Sequence record: KJ019152.1
Strand: one strand, 5' to 3'
DNA: 64,000 nucleotides
Shown: one piece after another, positions 32,609-52,683 of the stretch
Layout of the letters: each line of letters begins with the position of its first letter
How positions within the stretch are numbered: position 1 is the first letter of the stretch
Made by a program: the position numbers and the translations under genes
The notes under the pieces: generated by a model
What the model saw: the letters and a program-made list of their open reading frames with translations, nothing else
The model's database searches: none
What the model was told of the DNA's origin: nothing

Positions 32609-32737
32609 ATGAACGTCCCCAACTGGCAGAAGCACTCCAAGAAAGACCAGAAGGGTCGCGGAGTGAGCAAGGGTCAGATGAGAGCCCGCAAACAGGCTCT
32701 ACGTGCCCTGAAGGCAAAGCTCCTTGTGACAGTCTAG
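32609..32737 (+). CDS. Small basic hypothetical protein
   Basis: MNVPNWQKHSKKDQKG...; stop inside cassette 6 dyad. Confidence 0.65.
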   Translation: MNVPNWQKHSKKDQKGRGVSKGQMRARKQALRALKAKLLVTV

Positions 32738-32784
32738 GAAGTGGCACAAGCCCCCTAGGCAAGACCCCCAAACCCTGCTATACT
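32725..32784 (+). promoter_or_regulatory. Cassette 6
   Basis: TGTGACAGTC-TAGG-AAGTGGCACA; TAGGCA-17-TATACT. Confidence 0.9.
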
Positions 32785-32807
32785 AAACACATACAAAGGA
32801 AACCACC

Positions 32808-33218
32808 ATGGCTCGTCACTCTGAAGTTCTCATCCAAGGCACCGAGGTTCCCGGTCTTCGTATGATCGTAACCGTTCCAGTCGATCACACCTGGGCATCA
32901 GAAACCGCCCGTAGCATCTACGGATTCGGTGGCAACACCCAATACATCTGGCGGAAGTCTTGGGAGACTAACAAACCCGCTCCCCGTGGTGGTGGTGGTT
33001 CGTCCTCCTCCTCTGGCATGGGTCCTGGAGCTATCCTGATGGGGATGATTGGTCTTATCCTGGTTGCTGGTATTGGTTCCGCCTTCGAGGGTAACGACAC
33101 CCCCTCAGCTCCTTCCTATGACGCTCCCGCACCTGTTGAGAGGTCATACGTTCCACAGGCACCCGCAGCCTCCTATGACAATGGCCCTTGTCTCACCGCT
33201 AACTTCGAACCTTGTTAA
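32808..33218 (+). CDS. Membrane-anchored hypothetical protein
   Basis: GGGGSSSSS linker, then hydrophobic GAILMGMIGLILVAGIG. Confidence 0.65.
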   Translation: MARHSEVLIQGTEVPGLRMIVTVPVDHTWASETARSIYGFGGNTQYIWRKSWETNKPAPRGGGGSSSSSGMGPGAILMGMIGLILVAGIGSAFEGNDTPSAPSYDAPAPVERSYVPQAPAASYDNGPCLTANFEPC

Positions 33219-33219
33219 T

Positions 33220-33393
33220 ATGAATGACTTTCGCCCCCCGCATCACACCACTACTAAAGAAGAGTGGGAGTTTATTTTCCAAACACAGATACATAACTGC
33301 GCCCAACTAAAGAACACAGAACTCCAACGTTTTGTGTGTGTAGATAGTACGGGCAACAAAACTACCAAATATGTTATAGAATACAATGACTGA
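33220..33393 (+). CDS. Hypothetical protein
   Basis: Start refined to ATG 33220. Confidence 0.5.
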   Translation: MNDFRPPHHTTTKEEWEFIFQTQIHNCAQLKNTELQRFVCVDSTGNKTTKYVIEYND

Positions 33394-33676
33394 AAAAGAA
33401 GTAGAGCTACACTTTGGGAGTGAGTATGAGGCTGGCATTGACTATGGGGATAGTGATGATTCAGACATTTTAGACTACACCAAAGAAGTAAGTGTCACAC
33501 TAACCCGTTCAGATTGGAATTGGTTTGTTACACTGATGTCAGACTCCGTTAATAAGATGGAGGCTGCAGTTTCTGCACAAGGTATGGATGCTGAGTCCTT
33601 CCTTTCTATTGATGTTCTTCGCACTATTCGTAATGAAATCGCAACTCAGAGTGGGCTCACTCAATACATTGATTGA
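33386..33676 (+). CDS. Hypothetical protein
   Basis: Operon-like packing. Confidence 0.6.
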   Translation: MTEKEVELHFGSEYEAGIDYGDSDDSDILDYTKEVSVTLTRSDWNWFVTLMSDSVNKMEAAVSAQGMDAESFLSIDVLRTIRNEIATQSGLTQYID

Positions 33677-33677
33677 G

Positions 33678-33950
33678 ATGCCAGTAGTGGCACCTAAAGG
33701 TTATCACTATGAGGCAGTAGAACACAAACAAAACGTAGTGGCTATTTGGTTATGTGGAGGTCCAACATACCTCTACAAGATGGGAGAAACTGCTAGAACT
33801 ATTCACTCCTTCTATAATATTAAGAAGAAAACCTGGTATGCACCTATCAACTGCAAGAAGCCAGGTAAGGAGGTATCAGTGGATAAGATACGACCTTACA
33901 CATCAATGCAACTGAACTACAACCCTCTGGAGATGCTACTATATGGCTAA
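33678..33950 (+). CDS. Hypothetical cyanophage protein
   Basis: APKGYHYE..IWL..WYAPIN.KKPGKEV..RPYTSMQLN. Confidence 0.7.
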   Translation: MPVVAPKGYHYEAVEHKQNVVAIWLCGGPTYLYKMGETARTIHSFYNIKKKTWYAPINCKKPGKEVSVDKIRPYTSMQLNYNPLEMLLYG

Positions 33951-33985
33951 ATATATGTTATAATATCATAACATATATCACGAAT

Positions 33986-34207
33986 ATGAAGTCCAAAGAC
34001 CAATACAAGAAAGAGTTTCAATTCACACTGAATACATCTGATGATAAGATCGCGGAAGAGAATATTCTTCACGATTTCGCCAGAGAGGTTTCAGTTATTG
34101 ATGCTTTCCTACAAGGTGGGAAGGTATCACTAAAGGAGGCAAAACAGCGTATCAAAGATGTATACAAAGTGTGGAAGAACTCACTGAAAAACAACAACCA
34201 AATGTAA
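33986..34207 (+). CDS. Hypothetical protein
   Basis: GGKVS..EAKQRIK..YKVWK. Confidence 0.6.
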   Translation: MKSKDQYKKEFQFTLNTSDDKIAEENILHDFAREVSVIDAFLQGGKVSLKEAKQRIKDVYKVWKNSLKNNNQM

Positions 34208-34594
34208 ATGGAACCTTTCCTGCTAATGGCTGTTGATGTAGCTGAATCTTCACCTTCTAGAAAGAAGGTTGGAGCTGTTCTAATGAATAAGAACAAAGTT
34301 ATAGCAACAGCCACAAATCATGATTGTAAATCACACCCTCTACAAGCAAAGTGGGCAGAACGTGTGGGACTATCTGAAAAGATATATCTACACGCTGAAA
34401 TGTCAGCAATGATCAAAGCTCGTGATGACTCAGACAAAATCGTTGTAGTTAGACTAGGAGGACATTCTGGTCACGAACTACGACAATCTCGTCCTTGTCC
34501 TATATGTGAATCATACCTGAAACATTCAGGCATTGAACATGTATATTATTCCACTGGGAATAACAAATTTACCTATGAATACTGGGGGAAATGA
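34208..34594 (+). CDS. Cytidine/dCMP deaminase-fold zinc protein
   Basis: HAE and PCPIC zinc motifs; KVGAVL. Confidence 0.85.
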   Translation: MEPFLLMAVDVAESSPSRKKVGAVLMNKNKVIATATNHDCKSHPLQAKWAERVGLSEKIYLHAEMSAMIKARDDSDKIVVVRLGGHSGHELRQSRPCPICESYLKHSGIEHVYYSTGNNKFTYEYWGK

Positions 34595-34791
34595 TGGAAA
34601 CGTTCACAGCAACTTGTCCCAAAGACTACGACAGACATCACTATTCAGTTGTCAACAAAGACGGCACGAATAGGATGTTTAGTAGTTGGGAACTCGCACA
34701 GAGTTACTGGTGGCATACTAACAAACTTGGCACACTATCACACATCGATGTGATAGACTATAAAGAACAATCAAGAGGTTTTGGAGCATGA
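34591..34791 (+). CDS. Hypothetical protein
   Basis: YDRHHYSVV..WELAQSYWW; overlapping start/stop. Confidence 0.6.
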   Translation: MMETFTATCPKDYDRHHYSVVNKDGTNRMFSSWELAQSYWWHTNKLGTLSHIDVIDYKEQSRGFGA

Positions 34792-35006
34792 ACATGTTGG
34801 GTAAACAATCAGAGACTGGGATGAAAGTAACCTTTCTTGGTTATATCCCAGAACAAGTGAAGTTCGCAGGATCTGACACACCAGACAAACTGAATACCAC
34901 TACAACATATACCATTGAACAGGTAAAACGATTCAACTCGTATACCAAGATCAAACTAGTTGGTGATGATCTGTGGTATAATTCAGTTCACTTTAGAGTT
35001 ACTTAA
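34788..35006 (+). CDS. Hypothetical protein
   Basis: ATGA coupling. Confidence 0.6.
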   Translation: MNMLGKQSETGMKVTFLGYIPEQVKFAGSDTPDKLNTTTTYTIEQVKRFNSYTKIKLVGDDLWYNSVHFRVT

Positions 35007-35206
35007 TGGATAACATCTATGGGCGTGAGTATCACAGACATGCTGTTGATTACGCTCTGATGATAGGTGAGTTAGAAGGAACTTACACTCACCTGAAACG
35101 AATGTCTTACTTTGAGGATGCTGCTATCCTTGAAGAAATGAAGAAACGTTACTACAAGATCTACTTCCGTACCTTACGTGAAGAAAGAGAAAAAGCAGAA
35201 AACTAA
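35006..35206 (+). CDS. Hypothetical protein
   Basis: TAATG coupling. Confidence 0.6.
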   Translation: MDNIYGREYHRHAVDYALMIGELEGTYTHLKRMSYFEDAAILEEMKKRYYKIYFRTLREEREKAEN

Positions 35207-35224
35207 CCTAATTGAGGATTTTGA

Positions 35225-35533
35225 ATGGTGTTAACTTGGACCGACGAAGAGAAAGTAAACCTAACCCGTGCAGAGGTTAGTATTCATGGGGAGAATATCA
35301 CTCCAGATAAACTAGACAACAAAACTCTACCAACAGATATTCATGTCATTGAATATGAGATGGAAGGTGTAACTTACTACGACGCGGTTCGTGCCTACAA
35401 AATGGTTAGCATCTTTGATGTATATCACGATAAGCTAAAAGGTGGTGGTAAAGTTGTTAGAATCACCAATGGGTATGGTAGCATTAGACCTAACCTGTGG
35501 AACAACAATAAGAGTGAGAAAGGTGATGAGTGA
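35225..35533 (+). CDS. Hypothetical cyanophage protein
   Basis: GAGG RBS; LPTD..IFDVYHD..GYGSIRPNLW. Confidence 0.7.
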   Translation: MVLTWTDEEKVNLTRAEVSIHGENITPDKLDNKTLPTDIHVIEYEMEGVTYYDAVRAYKMVSIFDVYHDKLKGGGKVVRITNGYGSIRPNLWNNNKSEKGDE

Positions 35534-35705
35534 GAGGAAGTCTGAGGACTGGATTAGTGAGTGGAAAGGAATGAATGATGAGTTCATTGAAGAAGACACT
35601 ATGTTCAGACTTGACATTCCTTCCACTGAAAAGACACAAGAATGGATGGATAGAGAACCATTAATCTTAAAAGTAGATCACTCGAAGTATTATTTTGATG
35701 ACTGA
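35526..35705 (+). CDS. Hypothetical protein
   Basis: Start refined to ATG 35526. Confidence 0.5.
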   Translation: MSERKSEDWISEWKGMNDEFIEEDTMFRLDIPSTEKTQEWMDREPLILKVDHSKYYFDD

Positions 35706-35901
35706 AGAAGATCCAATGATCAACTGGAAACAGAAGATGATGAAACATTGCACCCACGATTGGGAAAAGCAACTATTACGTGAAGGTGCCACATCATCTG
35801 TGACAGCAATGGGTATAATGTCACTAAAGAAACGATACAAAAGGATTATGGGTATTGATGATGATCCAAAGCCACCTGTAGTTCAGTACGCCTCCTATTG
35901 A
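35695..35901 (+). CDS. Hypothetical protein
   Basis: ORF track; packed in operon. Confidence 0.55.
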   Translation: MMTEEDPMINWKQKMMKHCTHDWEKQLLREGATSSVTAMGIMSLKKRYKRIMGIDDDPKPPVVQYASY

Positions 35902-35907
35902 TACTTT

Positions 35908-36312
35908 ATGAATAAGAACAAGCACAATGAGACTGTAGGATCTACAGTAGAAAGATCAGACGAGAGGATCAAAGACACTGGGGAGGTATTCACTCCCCTA
36001 GAACTGTGTCGTGAGATGGTGAACGAGATCCCTGAATCTACCCTACAAGATCCCAACTCCACCTTTTTAGATAATTCTGCTGGCTGTGGTAACTTCCTCA
36101 TCGCCCTCAGGGACCGGCTATTGGAATATCATGAGTTATCACATATCGTAGACAATATGATCTACTGTGTGGAACTTATGGAGGATAATCATAAGGAAAT
36201 CTGTAAGACAATGGGGGTATCTACCGATCATCCACACTATGTAAGGGCAAATGCACTGGAATACGATTATAGCTTCGGCAACCCCGTTGGGTTGGAAGGT
36301 TTCTTCGTGTGA
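35908..36312 (+). CDS. Short N6-adenine MTase-like protein (SAM-binding half only)
   Basis: GEVFTP, FLDNSAGCGNFL, YCVELMEDN; no NPPY; stop in cassette 7 dyad. Confidence 0.75.
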   Translation: MNKNKHNETVGSTVERSDERIKDTGEVFTPLELCREMVNEIPESTLQDPNSTFLDNSAGCGNFLIALRDRLLEYHELSHIVDNMIYCVELMEDNHKEICKTMGVSTDHPHYVRANALEYDYSFGNPVGLEGFFV

Positions 36313-36367
36313 CACCTGAATAACTGGCACAAGGGGGGTAGGCACCCCCCTTTTTTTGTGCCATAAT
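36308..36367 (+). promoter_or_regulatory. Cassette 7
   Basis: TGTGACACCT-GAAT-AACTGGCACA; TAGGCA-17-CATAAT; G6/C6 hairpin with T7. Confidence 0.9.
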
Positions 36368-36393
36368 ACAGAGGTAAACAACGGGAACCACCC

Positions 36394-36771
36394 ATGCAAC
36401 TACCTACCCCCCTGCTAAACAGAGGTTACACTATAAACGGCAATACTGCCAGTAGGGTATATCAGCACGGTTTTAGAGTAGAGTTAGAGGCACTAACTAC
36501 CCTAAACATGCCCATAGGTTTACTAAACTATATTATAAACGAAAACGATATAGAGTGCCCCTGGGCACCATCAGATGTAGAGCAGTTTGATACTATCTGG
36601 CACTATACTGTTACAGATATTAGAGGTGAGATACTAGATAATACATATGGTTTTACAACCTATTATATGTTTGACTCTATTAGAGAGATACATAACGCAC
36701 TAACAGATATTACAGTAGATAATGCGTTAGATATTATGAATGGCACATCTGAACTATATGCCACCTGCTAA
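36394..36771 (+). CDS. Hypothetical early protein
   Basis: Follows cassette 7; stop in cassette 8 dyad. Confidence 0.7.
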   Translation: MQLPTPLLNRGYTINGNTASRVYQHGFRVELEALTTLNMPIGLLNYIINENDIECPWAPSDVEQFDTIWHYTVTDIRGEILDNTYGFTTYYMFDSIREIHNALTDITVDNALDIMNGTSELYATC

Positions 36772-36816
36772 ACTGGCACAGGGGGGCTAGGCACAGCCCC
36801 CTATACCTGCTACACT
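36757..36816 (+). promoter_or_regulatory. Cassette 8
   Basis: TATGCCACCT-GCTA-AACTGGCACA; TAGGCA-17-TACACT. Confidence 0.85.
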
Positions 36817-36838
36817 AAACACATACCAAACCAATACT

Positions 36839-37015
36839 ATGTTTGAATTGATGTTACTGGCGGGGGTGGCATTCACACCTCTCCAAGGATCAGAAACTAT
36901 CAACCAATTTTGTTCTGAAGTTGTTGGTATCCCATACGCCAGTGATAACTTCACTGATGAAGAATGGGAACGTTTTACTTATTGTCGTGAATCTATCAAG
37001 GTACCTCAAAAATGA
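36839..37015 (+). CDS. Small exported-type protein (58 aa, not in ORF track)
   Basis: MFELMLLAGVAFTPLQG..FCSEVVGIPYASDNFTDEEWERFTYCRES. Confidence 0.65.
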   Translation: MFELMLLAGVAFTPLQGSETINQFCSEVVGIPYASDNFTDEEWERFTYCRESIKVPQK

Positions 37016-37299
37016 AAGAATCAATTATCTCTGGCATCAAAGGTGGTTTAATAGGCACAGGTTCTGCACTCGTTGTGTTTGCTGGAATTGAGTTCTTCTT
37101 CCCCACTCCAGATACATACACAATCGATCTCAACAAAAGAGAAACTATCTCCCTAAAGATGTCTGTTATTCGCACACCCTGTGGATATGATTATTGTTTC
37201 ATTCCTGCCATCAAAGAAGGAGAAGCAATTGAGATTGAAACACATAACCCAAACCCTGAGCCCGGTTTCCTTCGCCCTGTAGAATCTACTGATTACTGA
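37012..37299 (+). CDS. Membrane hypothetical protein
   Basis: N-terminal hydrophobic segment. Confidence 0.55.
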   Translation: MKESIISGIKGGLIGTGSALVVFAGIEFFFPTPDTYTIDLNKRETISLKMSVIRTPCGYDYCFIPAIKEGEAIEIETHNPNPEPGFLRPVESTDY

Positions 37300-37300
37300 T

Positions 37301-37510
37301 ATGGATTATCAACCCCCAACTCTCTGTATTCGGAGTATTGAACCAGCTGCAACTCCCGGTAGGTTCCTGTTAGATATGCCTTCACTTTGGAGAGAACCAG
37401 GAGCATTAGAGGTGGATCAATATACCATCGATTATGTTACTGGTGGGAAATATGAGGTTCCTAAATGTCCCCCAGGTTATCCAAATCCACCAACCCCTGA
37501 TACACAATGA
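37301..37510 (+). CDS. Hypothetical protein
   Basis: ORF track. Confidence 0.55.
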   Translation: MDYQPPTLCIRSIEPAATPGRFLLDMPSLWREPGALEVDQYTIDYVTGGKYEVPKCPPGYPNPPTPDTQ

Positions 37511-37577
37511 CACCCGAAGAATTTGAAGAAAACGCAAGAATTATCACGGGTGACCCAACATGGTCACTAGATGATGA

Positions 37578-37637
37578 TGTGACAGTTGAGGAAGTGTCAC
37601 AAGCCCCCTTGGCAAACCCCCTGAAACCTGTTATCTT
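37578..37637 (+). promoter_or_regulatory. Cassette 9
   Basis: TGTGACAGTT-GAGG-AAGTGTCACA; TTGGCA-17-TATCTT. Confidence 0.85.
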
Positions 37638-37697
37638 ATAGGAGTGGGAGAGATACACCCCCCACACCAAACAAACCCCCTACAACCCCTTCTAAGT

Positions 37698-38048: not shown

Positions 38049-38055
38049 TAACACT

Positions 38056-38080
38056 GGAGGGTTTACAACCCTCCTTTTTT
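38056..38080 (+). terminator. Rho-independent terminator
   Basis: GGAGGGTT-TAC-AACCCTCC-TTTTTT. Confidence 0.8.
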
Positions 38081-38088
38081 ATGCCATG

Positions 38089-38117
38089 TTGCCACTACAG
38101 TGAATATGTGTTATAAT
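38089..38117 (+). promoter_or_regulatory. Non-cassette sigma70 promoter
   Basis: TTGCCA-17-TATAAT. Confidence 0.6.
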
Positions 38118-38746: not shown

Positions 38747-38806
38747 TGTGCCAGTTGGACTAGTGGCACAACCCCCCTTGGCAAACCCACAGCAGTCGTG
38801 TATTGT
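38747..38806 (+). promoter_or_regulatory. Cassette 10
   Basis: TGTGCCAGTT-GGAC-TAGTGGCACA; TTGGCA-17-TATTGT. Confidence 0.85.
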
Positions 38807-38852
38807 ATAGAAGTGGAGGGGAGACCCACCACACAAACCATTCACCAAAACA

Positions 38853-39291: not shown

Positions 39292-39537
39292 ATGAACACA
39301 ACAACAATCAACATTCTCAAATCACTGGACATTCTTTCCACTTTGATTCAGGCATTCTATGAGATTGGATATGAACTTGGCACCTTCTATCGCAACCATC
39401 TTCATTCACATGTGAAGTTTGCTATTGAATACTCTGGTCTTGTTATTCGTGAGACCTATGGTAACCGTCAAGAGTATTTCACAAAACTGAATAACTTCCG
39501 CAACCAAGCTGGTTCATACTTTGTCTATAGCGTGTGA
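39292..39537 (+). CDS. Hypothetical protein
   Basis: Stop TGA in cassette 11 dyad. Confidence 0.65.
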   Translation: MNTTTINILKSLDILSTLIQAFYEIGYELGTFYRNHLHSHVKFAIEYSGLVIRETYGNRQEYFTKLNNFRNQAGSYFVYSV

Positions 39538-39592
39538 CAGTTGAGGAAGTGGCACAACCCCCCTTGGCAAACCCCTCAGGGGGTGCTATACT
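39533..39592 (+). promoter_or_regulatory. Cassette 11
   Basis: TGTGACAGTT-GAGG-AAGTGGCACA; TTGGCA-17-TATACT. Confidence 0.92.
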
Positions 39593-39617: not shown

Positions 39618-39860
39618 ATGACTCATCTTTCCTTCACTCAGACCACACAAAACGCACTCCGTGAGTTAGATCGTTTAGAGGGAATTAAAGTTAGACTCGC
39701 TGGTCTGATTGTTGATCTTAAAGAGACACCATCAGCTAACTCTGAGACTTGGGTCAGGATGTATACTGACCGCCTCGTTTCTAATGTTATCCCAGCCATC
39801 AAGGAAGTTAAAGAATATCTCACTAGTCAGGATGCACTAGTTACCAAAGCATCCAACTGA
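39618..39860 (+). CDS. Hypothetical early protein
   Basis: Start refined to ATG 39618 after AAGGGA. Confidence 0.65.
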   Translation: MTHLSFTQTTQNALRELDRLEGIKVRLAGLIVDLKETPSANSETWVRMYTDRLVSNVIPAIKEVKEYLTSQDALVTKASN

Positions 39861-39862
39861 CA

Positions 39863-39908
39863 AACTGGCACAAGGGGGGTTGGCAAGACCCCCCAAAACC
39901 CCTATACT
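39863..39908 (+). promoter_or_regulatory. Cassette 12 (right half-site)
   Basis: AACTGGCACA-7-TTGGCA-17-TATACT. Confidence 0.85.
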
Positions 39909-40191: not shown

Positions 40192-40250
40192 TGTGACAGT
40201 TGGAGAAGTGGCACACGCTTCCCCGCAAACCACCCCACACCTGCTATACT
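40192..40250 (+). promoter_or_regulatory. Cassette 13 (CCCGCA subtype)
   Basis: TGTGACAGTT-GGAG-AAGTGGCACA-6-CCCGCA-17-TATACT. Confidence 0.88.
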
Positions 40251-40448: not shown

Positions 40449-40508
40449 TGTGACAGTTGGACTAGTGGCACAAGCCCCCTAGGCAAACCCCTCCACACCT
40501 GCTATACT
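40449..40508 (+). promoter_or_regulatory. Cassette 14
   Basis: TGTGACAGTT-GGAC-TAGTGGCACA; TAGGCA-17-TATACT. Confidence 0.92.
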
Positions 40509-42043: not shown

Positions 42044-42103
42044 TGTGACAGTTGAATAAGTGGCACAAGGGGGGTTCGCAACCCTCCTTTTTTATGCTAT
42101 ACT
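42044..42103 (+). promoter_or_regulatory. Cassette 15
   Basis: TGTGACAGTT-GAAT-AAGTGGCACA; TTCGCA-17-TATACT; hairpin with T6. Confidence 0.9.
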
Positions 42104-42127: not shown

Positions 42128-42379
42128 ATGCCCAACCCTTTCGAGTCACTGACCTCTGAGGAGTTTTCGTTTCTATCTGACGCATGTGCCCTCTCTGAGC
42201 AAATGTGGAGGGAGCGCTCCCGTTCTATAAAAGTAGGGGAGCCACGTTGGTTTCTAGATGGTGAGCCCATGTTCACTGAAGAGGAATGTCGCTCAGAAAT
42301 GAAACGATACCGTGAGCTACAGAAGCGAGTTTCCTGGTTCACCCTCACACCAGAGGAGAGGGAGGGTGTGCCAGTCTAG
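42128..42379 (+). CDS. Hypothetical early protein
   Basis: AAGGA RBS; stop in cassette 16 dyad. Confidence 0.7.
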   Translation: MPNPFESLTSEEFSFLSDACALSEQMWRERSRSIKVGEPRWFLDGEPMFTEEECRSEMKRYRELQKRVSWFTLTPEEREGVPV

Positions 42380-42426
42380 AAACTGGCACAAGCCCCCTAG
42401 GCAAACCCCTCCTTTTCTGCTATACT
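42367..42426 (+). promoter_or_regulatory. Cassette 16
   Basis: TGTGCCAGTC-TAGA-AACTGGCACA (near-perfect dyad); TAGGCA-17-TATACT. Confidence 0.92.
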
Positions 42427-43354: not shown

Positions 43355-43548
43355 TGATTGACTTCGATACTCTAACTCACGAAGAACTAGAGAGACTATC
43401 TGATGACTGTGAAGACTTTCTTCTTCATAGAAATATACCTCTAAGGTCACATTCCTATGAGAATATCATCAGACATGCTATTTTGGAAGGATACCAACTC
43501 TCTCGGTATCCTGGTGTGACACCTGGGAAACTGGCACAAGACCCCTAG
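43354..43548 (+). CDS. Hypothetical protein reading through cassette 17 dyad
   Basis: C-term GVTPGKLAQDP encoded by the dyad. Confidence 0.6.
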   Translation: MIDFDTLTHEELERLSDDCEDFLLHRNIPLRSHSYENIIRHAILEGYQLSRYPGVTPGKLAQDP

Positions 43549-43574
43549 ACAAACCAGACCACACCTGCTATACT
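43515..43574 (+). promoter_or_regulatory. Cassette 17
   Basis: TGTGACACCT-GGGA-AACTGGCACA; TAGACA-17-TATACT. Confidence 0.9.
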
Positions 43575-45514: not shown

Positions 45515-45724
45515 ATGTCTTCACCATCAGCATTCACACCAGCATTAGGTCTAGAAGTTGAATACAGGGGCTTTGTGGGTTATATCAAGTTTATAGATGA
45601 AGAATATTTAACAGTGTGTGTGAAGAAGAAAGAGCACCAAATGTTTGGTGATGTTTGTATGGTTGTGTATCCAAGTCAGTGGGAACACATTAAACTAATG
45701 GGCGGACCTCACAGAGACCGCTAG
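45515..45724 (+). CDS. Hypothetical protein
   Basis: GLEVEYRGFVGYIKFID.EYLTVCV; stop in cassette 18 dyad. Confidence 0.65.
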   Translation: MSSPSAFTPALGLEVEYRGFVGYIKFIDEEYLTVCVKKKEHQMFGDVCMVVYPSQWEHIKLMGGPHRDR

Positions 45725-45781
45725 GACAGTTGGGGAAGTGTCACAAGGGGGCTAGGCAAGCCCCCTTTGTCGTGCTATACT
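45722..45781 (+). promoter_or_regulatory. Cassette 18
   Basis: TAGGACAGTT-GGGG-AAGTGTCACA; TAGGCA-17-TATACT; GGGGGCT/AGCCCCC hairpin. Confidence 0.88.
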
Positions 45782-45808: not shown

Positions 45809-45955
45809 ATGACTATCAACTTTAAAAGTCTATTCATCACCACTTGTGTGGGTCTCACCCTAATACTAGGGAGCTTCGCTTTTACCAGTGATTATGGTAC
45901 TGAGACCGGGCGTGGCGAACAGACTGAGAGCCCTTACTACGGACCCGCTTTCTAA
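45809..45955 (+). CDS. Small membrane/exported peptide
   Basis: MTINFKSLFITTCVGLTLILGSFA. Confidence 0.6.
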   Translation: MTINFKSLFITTCVGLTLILGSFAFTSDYGTETGRGEQTESPYYGPAF

Positions 45956-46000
45956 AGTGGCACAAGGGGGGTTGGCAATACCCTCTACACCTGCTATACT
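45955..46000 (+). promoter_or_regulatory. Cassette 19 (right half-site)
   Basis: AAGTGGCACA-7-TTGGCA-17-TATACT. Confidence 0.85.
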
Positions 46001-46023: not shown

Positions 46024-46200
46024 ATGTTCAAACTTCAACTCAAGTGGCAGAAAGAAGGTGAGTGGATTGATACAGTATACGCTCCTACAGAATACGCAAC
46101 AGCTTTCTTTCGTTGGAGACAGTACCAAGAGCTTTGGGGTGATACTCACACCTATCGCCTCCTCGATGTGACACCTCAGGAAGTGGCACAAGCCTCCTAG
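46024..46200 (+). CDS. Hypothetical early protein (58 aa, not in ORF track)
   Basis: MFKLQLKWQKEGEWIDTVY..LLDVTPQEVAQAS; reads through cassette 20 dyad. Confidence 0.65.
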   Translation: MFKLQLKWQKEGEWIDTVYAPTEYATAFFRWRQYQELWGDTHTYRLLDVTPQEVAQAS

Positions 46201-46226
46201 GCAAACCACCCCACACCTGCTATACT
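46167..46226 (+). promoter_or_regulatory. Cassette 20
   Basis: TGTGACACCT-CAGG-AAGTGGCACA; TAGGCA-17-TATACT. Confidence 0.9.
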
Positions 46227-46564: not shown

Positions 46565-46723
46565 ATGTTTGTATCCTTCACTGAAATCCAAGACTACATT
46601 CGCGAAGATCAATACACATATAGTGAGCGCCAGTTCCGCTCACGCAAGTATAAAAAGAACGAACGTCGTTATCAGCGTCGTCAGAAGCAACAACAAAGAG
46701 AACGCAACTACGATAGCGTGTGA
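46565..46723 (+). CDS. Small basic protein (52 aa, not in ORF track)
   Basis: MFVSFTEIQDYIRED..RKYKKNERRYQRRQKQ; stop in cassette 21 dyad. Confidence 0.55.
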   Translation: MFVSFTEIQDYIREDQYTYSERQFRSRKYKKNERRYQRRQKQQQRERNYDSV

Positions 46724-46777
46724 CAGTTGGAGAAGTGGCACACACTTCTCCGCAAACCCCTCAGGGGGTGCTATACT
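46719..46777 (+). promoter_or_regulatory. Cassette 21 (TCCGCA subtype)
   Basis: TGTGACAGTT-GGAG-AAGTGGCACA-6-TCCGCA-17-TATACT. Confidence 0.88.
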
Positions 46778-46802: not shown

Positions 46803-47027
46803 ATGACCACCACCACTCCAAACCTCTACAACGAAGCTATCCGTCGTTTGGCTGACGGGTTCTCCTCAGAGTTCGCTGAGTTCTGTGCAGGAGACGAGAG
46901 GGTTCACGAGATCATGATGGACCTCGCTAGTGAGTTCGTAGAAACCAATATCCCTGTAGTGAGTGAGGATAGCCAGCACGACGTGGCTTCTGAGCTCCTC
47001 ATGAGTATCACAGTCACCAAGGTGTGA
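46803..47027 (+). CDS. Hypothetical early protein
   Basis: Start refined; stop in cassette 22 dyad. Confidence 0.7.
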   Translation: MTTTTPNLYNEAIRRLADGFSSEFAEFCAGDERVHEIMMDLASEFVETNIPVVSEDSQHDVASELLMSITVTKV

Positions 47028-47082
47028 CAGTCTAGGAACTGGCACAAGGGGGGTTGGCAACACCCCCCAAAACCTCTATACT
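47023..47082 (+). promoter_or_regulatory. Cassette 22
   Basis: TGTGACAGTC-TAGG-AACTGGCACA; TTGGCA-17-TATACT. Confidence 0.92.
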
Positions 47083-48085: not shown

Positions 48086-48417
48086 TTAGCAAACTGTTTT
48101 CACTATCTCTTGTTCTTGCGGGTTCTATCTTACCCGCACAGGCATACCCCAATATCATATATTGGGAACGCATTGATTGTAACCTCATCACCGAAACTAT
48201 CCAGAAGTGTGATAGGTACAATGGGCAGAATGGAGTTTTCATCGAATCATACTACCTGGACATATACACAAACGAACATAGCTTTATAGATCCACGAGGA
48301 CCTGAAATAGTTGTACCTGATGTAATAGAAGAAGAGACACTAGATGATATCCAACCTGATGTAGAATACAACGAACCGATAACAACAACAGACCCACTCC
48401 TGAATGATAGTTACTGA
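48082..48417 (+). CDS. Exported hypothetical protein
   Basis: Signal peptide ending AQA; Cys pair. Confidence 0.6.
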   Translation: MISKLFSLSLVLAGSILPAQAYPNIIYWERIDCNLITETIQKCDRYNGQNGVFIESYYLDIYTNEHSFIDPRGPEIVVPDVIEEETLDDIQPDVEYNEPITTTDPLLNDSY

Positions 48418-48574
48418 TTTTTCCATATTCCTGTCGGCAACCACCTCCTACCATACCCCCTGCCAAACCGATATGGATTTTTCACCTTTTCCGTCTAGTG
48501 ACTCACTGGGTTCTCAGTGGGACCAAAATGAGAATCCACCCCCATACCCCCAGACAGAGCAAAACTCATAACCA
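48414..48574. repeat. Non-coding element copy B (~160 bp)
   Basis: CTGATTTT, CCGATATGG, GTCTAGTGACTCACTGGGTTCTCAG and AACCAT at the same spacing as copy A. Confidence 0.75.
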
Positions 48575-48633
48575 TGTGACAGTTGGATTAGTGGCACACG
48601 AAAGCCCGCAAACCCCTCAGGGGGTGCTATACT
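48575..48633 (+). promoter_or_regulatory. Cassette 23 (CCCGCA subtype)
   Basis: TGTGACAGTT-GGAT-TAGTGGCACA-6-CCCGCA-17-TATACT. Confidence 0.88.
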
Positions 48634-48655
48634 AAACCCATACACAACAAAACCA

Positions 48656-49012
48656 ATGATCTACTCTATCACTCACCAGGAGACTGGCATTACGTATTCA
48701 GTTAGCACTGAAGATATTCGTAAAGTTGCTAACATCCTCCCAATGAACTCCGAGGAGTTGGCTGACATGATGACAGGTCTGAATTGTGACTCATATGCAG
48801 ATATGGCAGAAGAGTATATTGAAGAAGTTGCGGATATGTATGATGATGTGGCACTGGCAACTGATAAGTTTATGAGTAGCACTGATGAAAGGGCACAAAC
48901 AACGTTCGCCTACTATCGTATCATGAACTGTGATAACTCTGATGAAGTATGTGAGCAGTATTGGCGTGATGACGCTATGGCTATGATCACTGACTACAAT
49001 GATCGCAAATGA
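48656..49012 (+). CDS. Acidic hypothetical early protein
   Basis: Follows cassette 23. Confidence 0.7.
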   Translation: MIYSITHQETGITYSVSTEDIRKVANILPMNSEELADMMTGLNCDSYADMAEEYIEEVADMYDDVALATDKFMSSTDERAQTTFAYYRIMNCDNSDEVCEQYWRDDAMAMITDYNDRK

Positions 49013-49320
49013 AACGCTACGGACTTTATTGGCTGAGAGCTATAACCCTAGGGGCTGGTCTAAACTTTGTTTTGACTGGTTATCTCATGGGTCACCAAAA
49101 GTGGAAGTTTCAACATGCAGCTCCACTCTCAGCGTTTATCTGTGTGAATCTATCGTATGTGGCGGATCGTCTTATCTTTGGTGATAAGAAGGAACCTGAA
49201 GATTTAGATCCAGATACTATTGTTATATCAACCCCACATTGTTGCCCCGTATGTTCAGAGTATCCTTGCACTTGTGACAGTTGGGAAAGTGGCACAACCC
49301 CCCTAGGCAACACCCTCTGA
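49009..49320 (+). CDS. Membrane protein with Cys cluster, reading through cassette 24
   Basis: Two hydrophobic segments; CCPVCSEYPCTC. Confidence 0.55.
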   Translation: MKRYGLYWLRAITLGAGLNFVLTGYLMGHQKWKFQHAAPLSAFICVNLSYVADRLIFGDKKEPEDLDPDTIVISTPHCCPVCSEYPCTCDSWESGTTPLGNTL

Positions 49321-49332
49321 ACCTGCTATACT
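49273..49332 (+). promoter_or_regulatory. Cassette 24
   Basis: TGTGACAGTT-GGGA-AAGTGGCACA; TAGGCA-17-TATACT. Confidence 0.92.
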
Positions 49333-49356
49333 AAACACATACCAAAGGAACCAACC

Positions 49357-49554
49357 ATGAAAGTCTCTCAGGAAGTTTTCAAGAGTTACATTCAGATACT
49401 GGATGAAAACACACAAACATCATGGGATATCCTAAATGTTTTGAATGATATTGTTAGAGGTGACTGGGATAACTCAGTCCAGTATTGTTTGGAAAATCCA
49501 TCAGGCGACCCTATGGATGATTTCAACTACGCAGGCAGTCGCCACCACTATTGA
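49357..49554 (+). CDS. Hypothetical early protein
   Basis: AAGGA RBS; ends DDFNYAGSRHHY. Confidence 0.7.
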   Translation: MKVSQEVFKSYIQILDENTQTSWDILNVLNDIVRGDWDNSVQYCLENPSGDPMDDFNYAGSRHHY

Positions 49555-49583
49555 TCACTAACTCACCACACTAACTAACAACT

Positions 49584-49865
49584 ATGACACGCACTCCAAT
49601 CACAGTTACCCTCAAGCGTAGCGAATGGGAATGTTATACAGACACTCCTGATACTATCATCGAAACTATCAACTCATACTTCTCTTATGTGTTATCAACT
49701 AAAGATAACGCGTTTGATGCACAGTCTGAGATATTCAAGTTTCTGAATATGTTTAGTGAGTTTGGGTTTATGGATAGTGAGTGCCTAGAATGTGCAACTA
49801 GAGTCATCAACAGATATTTCGATTCATACCTCTCCCGATGGAGCCAGATAGGTGTGACAGTCTAG
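49584..49865 (+). CDS. Hypothetical protein
   Basis: FSEFGFMDSE; stop in cassette 25 dyad. Confidence 0.65.
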   Translation: MTRTPITVTLKRSEWECYTDTPDTIIETINSYFSYVLSTKDNAFDAQSEIFKFLNMFSEFGFMDSECLECATRVINRYFDSYLSRWSQIGVTV

Positions 49866-49912
49866 GAACTGGCACAAGGGGGGTTGGCAAGACCCTCCAC
49901 ACCTGCTATACT
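49853..49912 (+). promoter_or_regulatory. Cassette 25
   Basis: TGTGACAGTC-TAGG-AACTGGCACA; TTGGCA-17-TATACT. Confidence 0.92.
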
Positions 49913-49937
49913 ATATTCATACCAAAGGGAACCACCC

Positions 49938-50528
49938 ATGACCATTTTTCTAGAAGACTACCTCCTCACCTCTTTCGCCAATAACCGTTCATCAAAGAGA
50001 ACTGATGATCTGAATGTGGCTCTTCTAAATGAGTTTCTAAATGAGTATCCTGAATACGCTGAACTAGAATGGAAGTTTGAAATACCTCTACCCGATGCCT
50101 ACGGTGCTACCTTCAAAGTAGATGCTGTGGGGTTTGAAGGTGATACACCTAAAATCGTTCTTCTCAATAAAAACGCTAACTCTAACTTCGCTCAGAATAT
50201 GAAAAACTACGCTAATACCAGCGTAGGTGAAGCCGCCCGAGTTCTGTTAGGCCCCATTGGTGAAGATGTAGAGAAAGTGTTCTTTATTACTGTTCATCCT
50301 AACTACTCACCTTTTTTCAAAAGTGATGGTTCTGTGAGTAGAATTGAAAATGTATGGAAGGCTAAAAAGAGAACCAATGTTGAATCTGTTCTGAAAAAGT
50401 TGTATGGTAGTAAAGTATCTACAATTACCTATTCATTTGATATCAACGAAATCAATGAGTTCTCTACTAAAACTCAGTTTCAGGATGGTATTACTATCTC
50501 TAACCTAAACTTTCATCAATGTGTATGA
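49938..50528 (+). CDS. Putative restriction endonuclease-like (PD-(D/E)xK-fold) protein
   Basis: FEIPL..FKVDAV..LLNKNANSNFAQN; directly upstream of a DNA MTase. Confidence 0.35.
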   Translation: MTIFLEDYLLTSFANNRSSKRTDDLNVALLNEFLNEYPEYAELEWKFEIPLPDAYGATFKVDAVGFEGDTPKIVLLNKNANSNFAQNMKNYANTSVGEAARVLLGPIGEDVEKVFFITVHPNYSPFFKSDGSVSRIENVWKAKKRTNVESVLKKLYGSKVSTITYSFDINEINEFSTKTQFQDGITISNLNFHQCV

Positions 50529-50540
50529 TATAATAAAGAT

Positions 50541-51311
50541 ATGAAGAATCAACTAATCAACGGCGAATGTTTAGAAGTCATGTCCACACTTCCTGATGGT
50601 TGTGTGGACATGGTGTTCTGCGATCTTCCTTATGGGACAACCCAAAATCATTGGGATGTTGTTATACCCTTTGATGATTTGTGGAAGCAATACAATAGAG
50701 TCGTAAAGGAAAATGGTGCTATTGTTCTCACAGCACAGTCGCCCTTCGACAAGGTGCTTGCCTGCTCTAATCTGAAAGAATTTCGTTATGAATGGATATG
50801 GGAAAAGAATAAGGCGACAGGACACTTAAACGCTAAAAAGATGCCAATGAAGGCACATGAGAATGTGTTAGTTTTCTATCGCAAACTACCCACATACAAT
50901 CCACAGAAAACAACAGGACATAAGCCTTTTGGTGCTGTTAAACCGAGAGATAATATCCCTGAGCCAGAGAAGAAGAGAAACTACAATCACCTCAGCAAAA
51001 CATATGGAAACGATGGCAATACCACTGATAGGTATCCTCGTTCTGTTCAGAAGTTTCCTGTTATTAACAATGATGACCCTCGTAAGTTTCATCCAACCCA
51101 GAAGCCAATTGGAATGATAGAATACTTTATAAAGACATATTCCAATGAGGGTGATATTGTGTTAGATAATTGTATGGGTTCAGGTTCTACCTGTATCGCT
51201 GCCAATAACCTAAACAGAGGATACATTGGAATTGAAAAAGATAAAGACATTTATCAGATGGCATCTGATTGGTTCAAAACAGAAACAACGCTAACACAGT
51301 TCATGTCATAA
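50541..51311 (+). CDS. DNA N6-adenine/N4-cytosine methyltransferase (beta class)
   Basis: DMVFCDLPYGTT (motif IV), HPTQKP, VLDNCMGSGST (motif I). Confidence 0.93.
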   Translation: MKNQLINGECLEVMSTLPDGCVDMVFCDLPYGTTQNHWDVVIPFDDLWKQYNRVVKENGAIVLTAQSPFDKVLACSNLKEFRYEWIWEKNKATGHLNAKKMPMKAHENVLVFYRKLPTYNPQKTTGHKPFGAVKPRDNIPEPEKKRNYNHLSKTYGNDGNTTDRYPRSVQKFPVINNDDPRKFHPTQKPIGMIEYFIKTYSNEGDIVLDNCMGSGSTCIAANNLNRGYIGIEKDKDIYQMASDWFKTETTLTQFMS

Positions 51312-51326
51312 TAGGAAGGATACCCA

Positions 51327-51386
51327 TGTGACAGTTGGAGAAGTGGCACAAGCCCCCTAGGCAAACCCCTCAGGGGGTGCTATACT
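51327..51386 (+). promoter_or_regulatory. Cassette 26
   Basis: TGTGACAGTT-GGAG-AAGTGGCACA; TAGGCA-17-TATACT. Confidence 0.92.
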
Positions 51387-51408
51387 ATATTCATACCAAA
51401 GGAACCAA

Positions 51409-51726
51409 ATGAATTTCAGAACACTAGCACTCACCACCACCCTGGCTCTCTCCACTGTCCTAGGTGGTTTGGCTCCTGAAGCTAAGTCAGCTGACTTTTG
51501 TGACAACATCCCCGGCAACTCGGGATACGTTTGTGTTACCATGGGTCTCTGGTTCGACTTGGTTGAGGCAGACATACCCGCCTTTGGTGGTAAAGAGTCA
51601 TTACACATCACCTGTGACGGTGGCTGGTCCTACCGTTCGAATGGCAACTGGAACAAAGACGCCGCTTCCCTTGTGGCTAAGGAATACTGTGAAGGTGCTG
51701 GCTGGAACAGCCACTCCGAGGTGTGA
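51409..51726 (+). CDS. Exported 4-Cys protein
   Basis: Signal peptide ending AKSA; similar to 46250; stop in cassette 27 dyad. Confidence 0.75.
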   Translation: MNFRTLALTTTLALSTVLGGLAPEAKSADFCDNIPGNSGYVCVTMGLWFDLVEADIPAFGGKESLHITCDGGWSYRSNGNWNKDAASLVAKEYCEGAGWNSHSEV

Positions 51727-51781
51727 CAGTTGAGGAAGTGGCACAAGCCCCCTAGGCAAACCCCTCCATACCTGCTATACT
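51722..51781 (+). promoter_or_regulatory. Cassette 27
   Basis: TGTGACAGTT-GAGG-AAGTGGCACA; TAGGCA-17-TATACT. Confidence 0.92.
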
Positions 51782-51803
51782 ATATTCATACCAAAGGAAA
51801 CCA

Positions 51804-52070
51804 ATGTTCCCACACCTCCACATCTCTGAATCAAACCTCGGACCTCACACCTCCATGTTTTTCAAAGTATCATCACAACCACAAGATGAGTGGCAGAATG
51901 GCATTTTCCATAACTCACCTTATGGCATCTTTCACCTTCATTCTGAGAAAGGTGTTTATAAGTTGGAACTATCTTCCTCAGGTTTGAATACTCCTAAGTT
52001 TCGCAAGTGTAAGTGTGAAGATGAACTTACCGCACTCACTAAGATTCGTCAGTGGATGGATAAGTTCTGA
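51804..52070 (+). CDS. Hypothetical cyanophage protein
   Basis: EWQNGIFHNSPYGIF..KLELSSSG..PKFRKCK. Confidence 0.75.
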   Translation: MFPHLHISESNLGPHTSMFFKVSSQPQDEWQNGIFHNSPYGIFHLHSEKGVYKLELSSSGLNTPKFRKCKCEDELTALTKIRQWMDKF

Positions 52071-52105
52071 TATTATCTAACACAAACCACTCACAACAAA
52101 CTATC

Positions 52106-52279
52106 ATGAACCGACTAGAACTACTGACCCAACGTGAACAACTGATGGAGAGGATTGACTCTATCTGTGATGAATTCTTTTATAAGAACTATAATGGAGA
52201 TACGTCAGAAGCAGATGAATTAGTTCGTATTCTATGTGATGCTGTTTGTGAAACCATAGACCCAGCGGGCATGGTGTGA
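52106..52279 (+). CDS. Hypothetical protein (57 aa, not in ORF track)
   Basis: MNRLELLTQREQLMERID..LCDAVCE; stop in cassette 28 dyad. Confidence 0.6.
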   Translation: MNRLELLTQREQLMERIDSICDEFFYKNYNGDTSEADELVRILCDAVCETIDPAGMV

Positions 52280-52333
52280 CAGTTGGACTAGTGGCACACG
52301 TTTCTCCGCAAACCCCTCCTCACCTGCTATACT
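52275..52333 (+). promoter_or_regulatory. Cassette 28 (TCCGCA subtype)
   Basis: TGTGACAGTT-GGAC-TAGTGGCACA-6-TCCGCA-17-TATACT. Confidence 0.88.
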
Positions 52334-52358
52334 ATATTCATACCAAAGGAAACCGACC

Positions 52359-52622
52359 ATGTTCCAAGTCTGTACCGAAGACGCTCTAGATCACCGCTAC
52401 ACAATTGATGAGTTTGAGACACTGGAAGAAGCCCAATCTTGTTATAACGAGTGTGTGAAGGTTGGAGCTGAGGGTTATGAGATTTCGGTTGAGTTAGAGG
52501 AAATCATTGGCGATCATGATGATTACGTTTCCATCGAGTTCACCGAGTGGTTTACACAAGAGAGTTGGGAGGAAGCACATCCATGGAATGATAAGGAAGG
52601 AGTTTGGGAGAACGTTGACTGA
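52359..52622 (+). CDS. Acidic hypothetical early protein
   Basis: AAGGA RBS. Confidence 0.7.
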   Translation: MFQVCTEDALDHRYTIDEFETLEEAQSCYNECVKVGAEGYEISVELEEIIGDHDDYVSIEFTEWFTQESWEEAHPWNDKEGVWENVD

Positions 52623-52623
52623 C

Positions 52624-52683
52624 TGTGACAGTTGGAGAAGTGGCACAAGCCCCCTAGGCAAACCCCTCCATACCTGCTATACT
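52624..52683 (+). promoter_or_regulatory. Cassette 29
   Basis: TGTGACAGTT-GGAG-AAGTGGCACA; TAGGCA-17-TATACT. Confidence 0.92.

Follow-up and report, generated by a model that had tools for sequence, protein, structure and literature searches.

A 24-bp dyad upstream of putative early promoters in a T4-like cyanophage matches an element of cyanobacterial yfr2 promoters

A run of small genes in a cyanophage is served by some 30 promoters, each preceded at a fixed distance by the same 24-bp dyad, and the question raised by this arrangement is what reads the dyad. The DNA concerned, 64,000 nucleotides of record KJ019152.1 (hereafter the window), is an identical match to positions 1-64000 of Synechococcus phage ACG-2014f isolate Syn7803C25; ACG-2014f is a 221-kb T4-like cyanomyovirus (Kyanoviridae, Atlauavirus). 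Between 27 and 57 kb, about 85 small open reading frames (ORFs) follow in series on the + strand, nearly all of them annotated as hypothetical proteins, and the series lies with tail-fibre genes on one side and baseplate genes on the other; for a T4-type phage, this is a hyperplastic region. A prediction made earlier from the sequence alone had ascribed the dyad to a phage or host factor. We found that the same 24-bp pattern, in the identical 29-30-nt phase, matches both the phage promoter cassettes and the promoters of eight cyanobacterial yfr2 genes, which points to a host factor, most likely the regulator PlmA.

Dyad architecture and promoter phase in the phage

The consensus TGTGMCASYY-N4-WASTGKCACA, allowing up to three mismatches, gave 56 strand matches in the window, equivalent to about 30 sites, whereas the shuffled window gave a mean of 0.32 and a maximum of 3 matches, so that the consensus of the original prediction is real. 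Curation on the right arm plus a promoter, with sites selected on TGGCACA, yielded 32 cassettes between 27235 and 56136, each consisting of the dyad and, after 29-30 nt, a -10 box followed by a start codon. The predicted array therefore exists, but the span of 32725-52683 first assigned to it was too narrow, both within the window and beyond it. The rest of the ACG-2014f genome holds only three extra copies, at 114488 (cobS), 156412 (gene _216) and 171127 (psbA), and 32 of the 35 genomic copies fall within 27-56 kb. The promoters of the three outlying copies precede cobS, a small ORF and the gene for the photosystem II D1 protein, respectively.

Across the 32 cassettes, information content was zero through the base preceding dyad position 1, high in both arms and near zero in the central 4 bp. 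Right-arm positions 16, 18, 19 and 21-24 were invariant (32/32), and the right arm was better conserved than the -35 hexamer, being the best-kept part of the entire promoter; the selection on TGGCACA contributes to both results. The left arm was degraded in the cassettes at 31218, 39849, 45941 and 55574 and partly so in that at 55881. An independent promoter scan found, at the cassettes, a -35 hexamer (TTGGCA, TAGGCA, TTGACA and similar), a 17-bp spacer and a -10 box TATACT. The dyad ends 7 or 6 bp before the -35 hexamer, and the distance from its end to the -10 box is 30 nt in 26 cassettes and 29 nt in the other 6. The original prediction had described a free centre, a right arm that is always kept, a left arm lost in four copies and a fixed phase with -35, and in all these respects it was borne out, with the partly degraded copy as a fifth. 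The annotated start codon lies 21-33 nt past the -10 box in 29 of the 32 cassettes, and the genes that follow encode proteins, not the small RNA (sRNA) Yfr2/Cyano-1. Judged from this promoter geometry, the centre of the dyad would be located at about -54.5 relative to the transcription start.

In being a dimer-type dyad that ends in TGTG and CACA and lies upstream of -35, the element resembles the class I and class II sites of CRP and NtcA, which are located upstream of or at -35 and aid the sigma70 polymerase. It differs from them in spacing, with TGTG-N16-CACA as against TGTGA-N6-TCACA for CRP and GTA-N8-TAC for NtcA, and in having its centre near -54.5 rather than at -41.5 or -61.5. The CRP, NtcA and sigma-54-like readings were all rejected on spacing, the first two in agreement with the original prediction. 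To our knowledge, cyanobacteria have no sigma-54. As had been proposed, the dyad is best accounted for by a dimeric (or multimeric) factor through which about 30 promoters are co-regulated.

The dyad at yfr2 promoters and in other genomes

GTDB, represented by one genome per species, was scanned with the pattern TGTGMCASTT-N4-AASTGKCACA. At least 120 loci matched, compared with a rough chance estimate of about 17, and among the matches listed most were from Acidobacteriota and about 16 were cyanobacterial. In eight cyanobacterial loci (four in Nodularia, the others in Anabaena, Umezakia, a Microcystaceae metagenome-assembled genome (MAG) and a Synechococcales MAG), the dyad was found just upstream of the Rfam family Cyano-1 (RF01701), with scores of 50-66 bits against a gathering score of 41. 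The RNAs at these loci carry the 5' GUGUGAGGAG motif and the GGAAACA repeat, which are the hallmarks of the Yfr2 family (PMC1242208). The order at these host promoters is the dyad, 29-30 nt, a TATTCT-like -10 box, about 8 nt and then GUGUGAGGAG, and the dyad lies upstream of the transcribed RNA. Because the eight loci were picked by the dyad alone and all have it at a fixed distance from a gene of few copies per genome, the association with yfr2 is not a product of the search method. In reporter data the Yfr2a promoter of Synechocystis is very strong, with about the strength of the psbA2 promoter, and is stimulated by light (PMC2662882). No Rfam family was matched in the phage window, and no yfr2 gene was found in the viral contigs of IMG/VR.

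A further set of yfr2 promoters was obtained independently of the dyad, by scanning metagenomes for the Yfr2 RNA, and consisted of eight Prochlorococcus-like contigs of low G+C content (31-37%), all of them Cyano-1 matches. Four of the eight promoters contain TGTGACAGTTGA(A/G)(A/G)AACT, in a 24-nt frame that ends 27-29 nt before the -10 box, and by sequence comparison the register of their left arm is essentially that of the phage. Two of these four (L255 and L257) read AATTGGCACA directly followed by TGTGACAGTT, that is, a right arm abutting a left arm, and in further Prochlorococcus-like copies an upstream terminator runs into CACA directly followed by TGTGCCAATC. The left arm TGTGACAGTT is common to the phage dyad and the Prochlorococcus-like yfr2 promoters, in the same register.

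The spread of the element among phages was determined by scanning IMG/VR with a slightly narrowed dyad pattern and then applying a relaxed pattern to the matching contigs. The dyad was present in at least 120 environmental cyanophage contigs; the relaxed pattern gave 461 unique sites in 120 contigs, 421 of which were followed by a -10-like hexamer (oriented sites), in 322 cases at an offset of 29-30. Information content in the environmental sites was low in the flanks, in the centre and even at -35, yet the positions outside the search pattern (5, 8, 9, 10, 15, 16, 17 and 20) were still strongly constrained. Since the dyad is conserved amid diverged flanks across phages, recent copying within one genome cannot account for its conservation. 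The A+T-rich contigs have the dyad together with A+T-rich promoters, and one of them (L018) is closest to Prochlorococcus phage P-TIM40, which has eight dyad promoters within 20 kb of small-ORF region. In Syn9 there are about six, before small ORFs, located near 47-53 kb and ahead of gp150 and gp183. On these comparisons the element is ancient and common to cyanomyoviruses of both host genera, Synechococcus and Prochlorococcus. The Syn9 dyad upstream of gp150 lies three genes ahead of a cobS-like gene. Two short contigs assigned to a Nanopelagicaceae MAG (L204) and a Pirellulales MAG (L207) have cyanophage-type dyad promoters and are probably mis-binned phage DNA.

Doron et al. (ISME J, 2016) reportedly described a novel regulatory element, abundant and conserved across the T4-like cyanophages, that controls early genes in Syn9 and P-TIM40. 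This element is probably the present dyad, which both of their study phages carry in a region of the kind expected. The word uncharacterised, which the original prediction applied to the dyad, is accordingly doubtful. The phage element has probably been reported before, and its connection with yfr2 and PlmA is the potentially new part: neither a binding factor nor a host counterpart of the cyanophage early motif was present in the literature searched, and the citing papers gave no sequence.

The cellular dyad sites (L130-L249, for example L203:4261-4330, L178 and L223), mostly of Acidobacteriota, often have an ATG 6-7 nt after a TAnnnT hexamer, which suggests leaderless genes. The putative leaderless genes encode proteins with signal peptides, beta-barrel proteins of the outer membrane and a trypsin-like peptidase, and from their sequences these sites look like an undescribed regulon architecture in Acidobacteriota. 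No one regulator gene recurred beside the cellular dyads, whose neighbours code for exported proteins, for beta-barrel outer-membrane proteins and for a trypsin-like peptidase.

A candidate host regulator and competing explanations

In their work on the yfr2 system, Lambrecht, Wahlig and Steglich (2018) describe CGRE1 as a palindrome of 21-22 nt that starts 55-57 nt upstream of the yfr2 start site; its flanks, GTTG or GTTA and the inverted repeat of these, are separated by 13-14 nt, and in yfr5 an upstream terminator disrupts one of its halves (PMC6191309). According to the same study, CGRE1 is bound by PMM1637, a PlmA homolog of the GntR family, as judged by pull-down and electrophoretic mobility shift assay (EMSA), the R50A mutant loses binding, and in E. 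coli a GFP reporter shows higher promoter output with CGRE1, PMM1637 being needed for the extra output; Yfr2 is induced under high light and nitrogen starvation (PMC6191309). PMM1637 is given as the sole GntR regulator within the small set of regulators of Prochlorococcus MED4, with homologs in all cyanobacteria (PMC6191309, PMC6778093). The palindrome that we retrieved, with its right arm followed by its left arm, fits the text on CGRE1 in length, flank spacing, position and the upstream half disrupted by a terminator. CGRE1 as reconstructed here and the phage dyad appear to be alike in being located upstream of -35 and in having the arms TGTGMCASTT and AASTGKCACA, and CGRE1 is an activator site (PMC6191309). 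PlmA is the leading candidate because the published site appears to be made of the same 10-mers as the dyad. A link between yfr2 or PlmA and cyanophage promoters was not found in the searched literature that mentions CGRE1 or PMM1637.

In the mechanism that we propose, each cassette would be a self-contained early transcription unit for the host sigma70-type RNA polymerase, made up of the dyad (about -66 to -43), a G+C-rich linker of 6-7 bp, a variable and often weak -35 (TTGGCA, TAGGCA or CCGCA), a -10 box TATACT separated from it by the 17-bp spacer, and a short conserved leader that includes a ribosome-binding site and runs up to the start codon. The dyad would be the double-stranded site of a pre-existing host protein that gives class-I-type aid to the polymerase from upstream of -35; its location upstream of a -35 that is often weak is the position expected of an activator. 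The phage would have copied the upstream element of host yfr2 promoters and placed the copies before about 35 genes, which would fire right after DNA entry and track the light and nitrogen status of the host, and the protein most likely to bind would be PlmA, the cyanobacterial GntR-family regulator known as PMM1637 in Prochlorococcus MED4. Given that early genes need factors already in the cell and that the same dyad and phase exist in uninfected cyanobacteria at a promoter that is strong and responds to stress, the phage would be recruiting the same host protein. Binding of the dyad by the factor that acts at host yfr2 promoters is, in our judgement, probable, and we lean fairly clearly towards activation rather than repression as its effect; the case for PlmA being that factor is evenly balanced. 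We slightly favour the combined reading, in which the cassettes are early promoters that depend on a host activator and imitate the yfr2 promoter, are most likely read by PlmA, and double as recombination junctions. The more general statement, that T4-like cyanophages start their early programme by recruiting PlmA through a copied ancestral yfr2 operator and also use the cassettes to shuffle early genes, is offered tentatively, as one that we do not quite favour.

Several points weigh against this reading. CGRE1 as used here is a reconstruction from the retrieved promoters plus the text description, not from the published figure, and its centre agrees with the published wording only when read in reverse. 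In the reconstructed CGRE1 the right arm abuts the left arm, with N4 and AAC after it in the Prochlorococcus-like promoters, whereas the phages and the non-marine cyanobacteria have the left arm, N4 and the right arm, and the arm pair of CGRE1 is centred one helical turn further upstream than the phage dyad. Owing to this difference in arrangement, a rigid dimer could not bind both sites identically. The abutting form had no match in the window, the rest of ACG-2014f or Syn9, and one match in 1.08 Mb of environmental phage DNA. The promoter-proximal arm, retained in every phage cassette, has decayed to AAC(T) in the Prochlorococcus-like yfr2 promoters, and a promoter with only one CGRE1 half gave no PMM1637 shift in EMSA (PMC6191309). 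Phage promoters drive protein genes, whereas yfr2 promoters drive an sRNA. The yfr2 promoters compared were those of Nostocales, the Microcystaceae MAG, the Synechococcales MAG and the Prochlorococcus-like contigs, not those of marine Synechococcus, the actual host group. A better -35 accompanied the loss of the left arm in four of the five defective cassettes, as against 9 of the 27 others, and the difference was not significant (p=0.13). The dyad is followed by TAnnnT at an offset of 29-31 in 83 of 123 cellular sites, mostly of Acidobacteriota; as PlmA is reported only from cyanobacteria, a related, different or broader factor must act at the Acidobacteriota dyads. Finally, what the sequence comparisons show is the motif with its phase and spread, the lack of selection for a hairpin, the host counterpart and the indel junctions; early timing, activation and the identity of the protein, like the transcription start sites, are what we infer.

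If the host-activator reading is true, one protein-DNA interaction accounts for about 35 genes firing at once, and early phage transcription would be wired to host light and carbon/nitrogen signalling, PlmA being a protein that interacts with PII-PipX; this might account for the sensitivity of infection to light and nutrient state. With PlmA homologs in all cyanobacteria, one element could work in both Synechococcus and Prochlorococcus. Knowledge of yfr2 promoters is also extended past the marine strains, to which CGRE1 had been taken to be confined, as the 24-bp element is found before yfr2 in Nostocales and in the Microcystaceae and Synechococcales MAGs. The cassette would be a candidate for a compact, strong, host-regulated promoter in cyanobacterial genetics. 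The connection with yfr2 and PlmA would, if confirmed, be a notable result.

The dyad could instead be bound by a phage-encoded protein, such as an activator delivered with the virion, or a repressor of early or middle timing that switches off the early regulon, and the original prediction had named an AbrB-like ORF at 57070 and a GIY-YIG ORF at 54497 as candidates. Both are weak. The conserved AbrB/SpoVT-like ORF 57070-57234 (54 amino acids, aa) matched the AbrB/MazE fold with 22.7 bits, below the Pfam cut-off of 24.7, and was detectable in only 64 of 50,697 phage records, mostly ACG-2014f isolates, while the dyad is found in at least 120 diverse contigs. ORF 54497-55207 is homing-endonuclease-like: its annotation is that of an intron-type endonuclease (cox1-i7), and its one match, to NUMOD1, is weak. 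The weak AbrB/MazE match nevertheless speaks for a phage protein, together with the P-TIM40 homolog of ORF 57070, gp091, which is annotated as AbrB/MazE/SpoVT DNA-binding and lies at a similar position, and so does the unlike arrangement of the phage dyad and CGRE1. T4-like cyanophages are without the MotA/AsiA system, which leaves room for another protein in early shut-off and is a further argument for this alternative (PMC5780444). However, early promoters must fire before phage proteins exist, and the ORF at 57070 lies behind a 480-bp non-coding stretch and a late-promoter-like TATAAAAT (57020-57030). Its product cannot account for the host sites, and the identical dyad at the identical distance in yfr2 of uninfected cyanobacteria of several orders means that a host protein already reads the dyad. 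We therefore consider a phage-encoded binder unlikely, and the product of ORF 57070 a minor rival, which might for instance be a regulator made late or carried in the virion. Direct contact of the dyad with RNA polymerase, in an UP-element-like or sigma-associated manner and with no separate factor, is less likely again. It would agree with the fixed 29-30-nt phase in phages, cyanobacteria and Acidobacteriota, and the arms lie roughly at the subsites of the alpha subunit C-terminal domain, the promoter-proximal one being always kept in the phage; but a dyad of 24 bp whose centre carries no information is what a dimeric regulator typically recognizes, and known UP elements are A/T-rich and non-palindromic. 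In addition, the extra output of CGRE1 promoters in E. coli reporters needed PMM1637 (PMC6191309).

The other two alternatives treat the dyad as a stem-loop. Its 10+10 arms are mismatched at pairs 5:20 and 8:17 in 25 and 24 of the 32 copies, respectively, most commonly as A:G at 5:20 (23/32) and G:G at 8:17 (17/32), and no compensatory changes at the mismatched pairs were found among the 32 cassettes. Folded as RNA, the common form reached -5 kcal/mol, no better than shuffles (z -1.2 to -1.6); the dyad at 42367 folded well (-13.8 kcal/mol), but such copies are few. Among the 421 environmental sites, Watson-Crick pairing at 8:17 was depleted, with 105 cases observed and 190 expected under independence, and only 11 dyads were fully complementary. 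Positions 8 and 17 favoured the same base on the same strand, which was the strongest coupling among non-adjacent positions (GG 174, CC 101, GC 80 and CG 25 in phage sites); the cyanobacterial sites (GG 5, GC 4, CC 4, CG 0) followed the order of the phage sites, and those of Acidobacteriota differed. The weak folding, the lack of compensation and the depleted pairing together lead us to read the dyad as a sequence-specific double-stranded DNA site, and on fold energies and depleted compensatory pairing the readings as an RNA hairpin or terminator and as a cruciform were rejected. The dyad is followed by a G+C-rich linker and no T-run, and the scan for intrinsic terminators called only separate hairpins at -35. 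These true terminator-like hairpins, formed by a G-run and a C-run with the -35 hexamer as the loop, are present in about six cassettes (27258-27278, 32547-32576, 36331-36352, 42067-42089, 45745-45767 and 53077-53096), four of them with a clear T-run. A role in RNA, in which the dyad would form a 3'-terminal hairpin of the upstream transcript for processing, stability or termination, would fit the overlap of the dyad with the stop codons of many upstream ORFs and the few copies that fold well; most copies, however, have about -5 kcal/mol with z above -2, no covariation and no U-tract after the dyad, and the host yfr2 dyad is upstream of the transcribed RNA, so that we regard this possibility as extremely remote. 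Only a little more credible is a cassette that is a mere mobile promoter-terminator of the PeSL type, its stem-loop dyad kept by copying or gene conversion. PeSLs (Arbiol 2010, PMC2839356; Comeau 2014, PMC4122927) comprise a repeated stem-loop, a sigma70-like early promoter, a Shine-Dalgarno sequence and a start codon, and occur in hyperplastic regions and at indel junctions (PMC4122927). The phage cassettes resemble them as short intergenic repeats in which a dyad lies upstream of a sigma70-like early promoter, a Shine-Dalgarno sequence and a start codon, clustered between the small ORFs of the hyperplastic region and at indel or replacement junctions, and the sub-parts of the cassettes are mosaic. 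In contrast, it is the structure that is conserved in PeSL stem-loops, which function as terminators, whereas the dyad is conserved in sequence and pairs poorly; no stable stem-loop was found just upstream of the promoter, the terminator hairpins being separate and around -35; and the dyad is kept across genera amid diverged surroundings and has a counterpart in host genomes.

Gene-module junctions and the individual cassettes

A part of the PeSL likeness that also belongs to the host-activator reading is the role of the cassettes in recombination, for which, as direct repeats of 60-80 bp, they serve as homologous junctions. In a comparison with isolate C34, two alignment blocks overlapped by 63 bp and started exactly at the dyad at 36308, where C34 has an extra 622-bp gene module with a cassette copy on each side. 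Between cassettes 49853 and 51327 the window has 1392 extra bases, comprising gene _94 and the Dam methylase gene _95, and isolates C34 and C90 have a single cassette there. In C90, the 402 bp between cassettes 36308 and 36757 are replaced by 3.5 kb encoding a methyltransferase and a helicase, and an HNH gene with its own cassette is also inserted. Other indels of the region involve homing endonuclease genes, not cassettes. That the cassettes are junctions of gene-module indels between isolates, in a PeSL-like shuffling role, is supported by these comparisons.

All 32 cassettes are on the + strand, and the -10 box is TATACT where no other is given. Cassette 27235-27293 (dyad 27235-27258; -10 TATAAT), in which a GC hairpin with a T-run after it holds -35 TTGGCA in its loop, precedes the coding sequence (CDS) at 27327, and 30114-30172, with a GGTG-variant dyad and -35 TTGGCA, precedes CDS 30199. 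At 31218-31277 the degraded left arm is accompanied by the right arm AAGTGGCACA, -35 TTGACA and -10 TACAGT (before CDS 31300). A terminator-like hairpin encloses -35 TTGGCA in the dyad cassette 32527-32586 (-10 CATAAT; before CDS 32609); the dyad cassette 32725-32784 has -35 TAGGCA and lies before CDS 32808. The cassette at the C34 and C90 indel junction, 36308-36367, has a dyad, a hairpin and T-run around -35 and a -10 box CATAAT (before CDS 36394), and that at the right junction of the C90 replacement, 36757-36816, has a TATG-variant dyad, -35 TAGGCA and -10 TACACT (before CDS 36839). Long leaders, of 60 and 46 nt, are found in the dyad cassettes 37578-37637 (-35 TTGGCA, -10 TATCTT; before CDS 37698) and 38747-38806 (-35 TTGGCA, -10 TATTGT; before CDS 38853). 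In 39533-39592 (-35 TTGGCA; before CDS 39618) the TGA of the dyad is the stop of the upstream ORF, and 39849-39908 has the right arm only, with -35 TTGGCA in the loop between GGGGGG and CCCCCC (before CDS 39938).

Further along, the dyad of 40192-40250 is followed by a weak -35, CCCGCA, at an offset of 29 nt to the -10 box (before CDS 40272), and that of 40449-40508 by -35 TAGGCA (before CDS 40533). Cassette 42044-42103 has a dyad with a hairpin and T-run around -35 TTCGCA (before CDS 42128), 42367-42426 a dyad that is a near-perfect palindrome, with -35 TAGGCA (before CDS 42449), and 43515-43574 a dyad of the C8/C17 type, with -35 TAGACA (before CDS 43599). A TAGG-variant dyad and a hairpin around -35 TAGGCA characterize 45722-45781 (before CDS 45809); 45941-46000, with the right arm only, has -35 TTGGCA (before CDS 46024). 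The dyad cassettes that follow are 46167-46226 (-35 TAGGCA; before CDS 46250), 46719-46777 (-35 TCCGCA, offset 29 nt; before CDS 46803), 47023-47082 (-35 TTGGCA; before CDS 47108) and 48575-48633 (-35 CCCGCA, offset 29 nt; before CDS 48656). In 49273-49332 (-35 TAGGCA; before CDS 49357) the dyad is within the 3' end of the upstream ORF. The 1392-bp module has at its left junction the dyad cassette 49853-49912 (-35 TTGGCA; before CDS 49938) and at its right junction 51327-51386 (dyad, -35 TAGGCA; before CDS 51409). Next are the dyad cassettes 51722-51781 (-35 TAGGCA; before CDS 51804), 52275-52333 (-35 TCCGCA, offset 29 nt; before CDS 52359), 52624-52683 (-35 TAGGCA; before CDS 52711) and 53053-53112, where a hairpin surrounds -35 TAGGCA before the helicase CDS at 53135. 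Cassette 55574-55633 (-35 TTGGCA; before CDS 55659) has a degraded left arm and 55881-55940, whose right arm reads ACTGTCACA, a partly degraded one (-35 TAGGCA; before CDS 55967). The last cassette, 56113-56172, has a dyad and -35 TTGACA, with an unannotated 53-aa ORF at 56197-56358 downstream; this frame begins 24 nt past the -10 box, and the next annotated gene is only at 56397.

In the roughly six cassettes with hairpins around -35, the terminator and the promoter overlap. The stop codon of many upstream ORFs is supplied by the dyad, as the TGA of TGTGA or as a TAG or TAA in the free centre (for example at 39535-39537, 46721-46723, 47025-47027, 42377-42379 and 49863-49865), and at 43515, 46167 and 49273 the upstream ORF reads through the whole dyad. 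Two main leader types, beginning with ATATTCATACCAAAGG and AAACACATACCAAACAAAGG, follow the -10 box; they combine freely with several linker and -35 types and with several central tetramers, which argues for mosaic exchange between cassettes. The subset with -10 TATCTT or TATTGT has a long purine-rich leader starting with GGAGTGGGAGAG or GAAGTGGAGGGGAG (37638-37697 and 38807-38852 in the window), and the same leader recurs in other cyanophages, namely near 53050 in Syn9 and in several IMG/VR contigs (L013, L020 and L006). The array also includes an intergenic promoter that has no dyad, at 38056-38117, consisting of a terminator hairpin, a near-consensus TTGCCA, a 17-bp spacer and TGTTATAAT (extended -10). 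Elsewhere in ACG-2014f, at 139000-139692 between a methylase gene and a cytidylyltransferase gene, a 230-aa protein of the sigma-70 family is encoded that is limited to regions 2 and 4 (Pfam 49 and 30 bits) and is distinct from the late sigma factor gp55.

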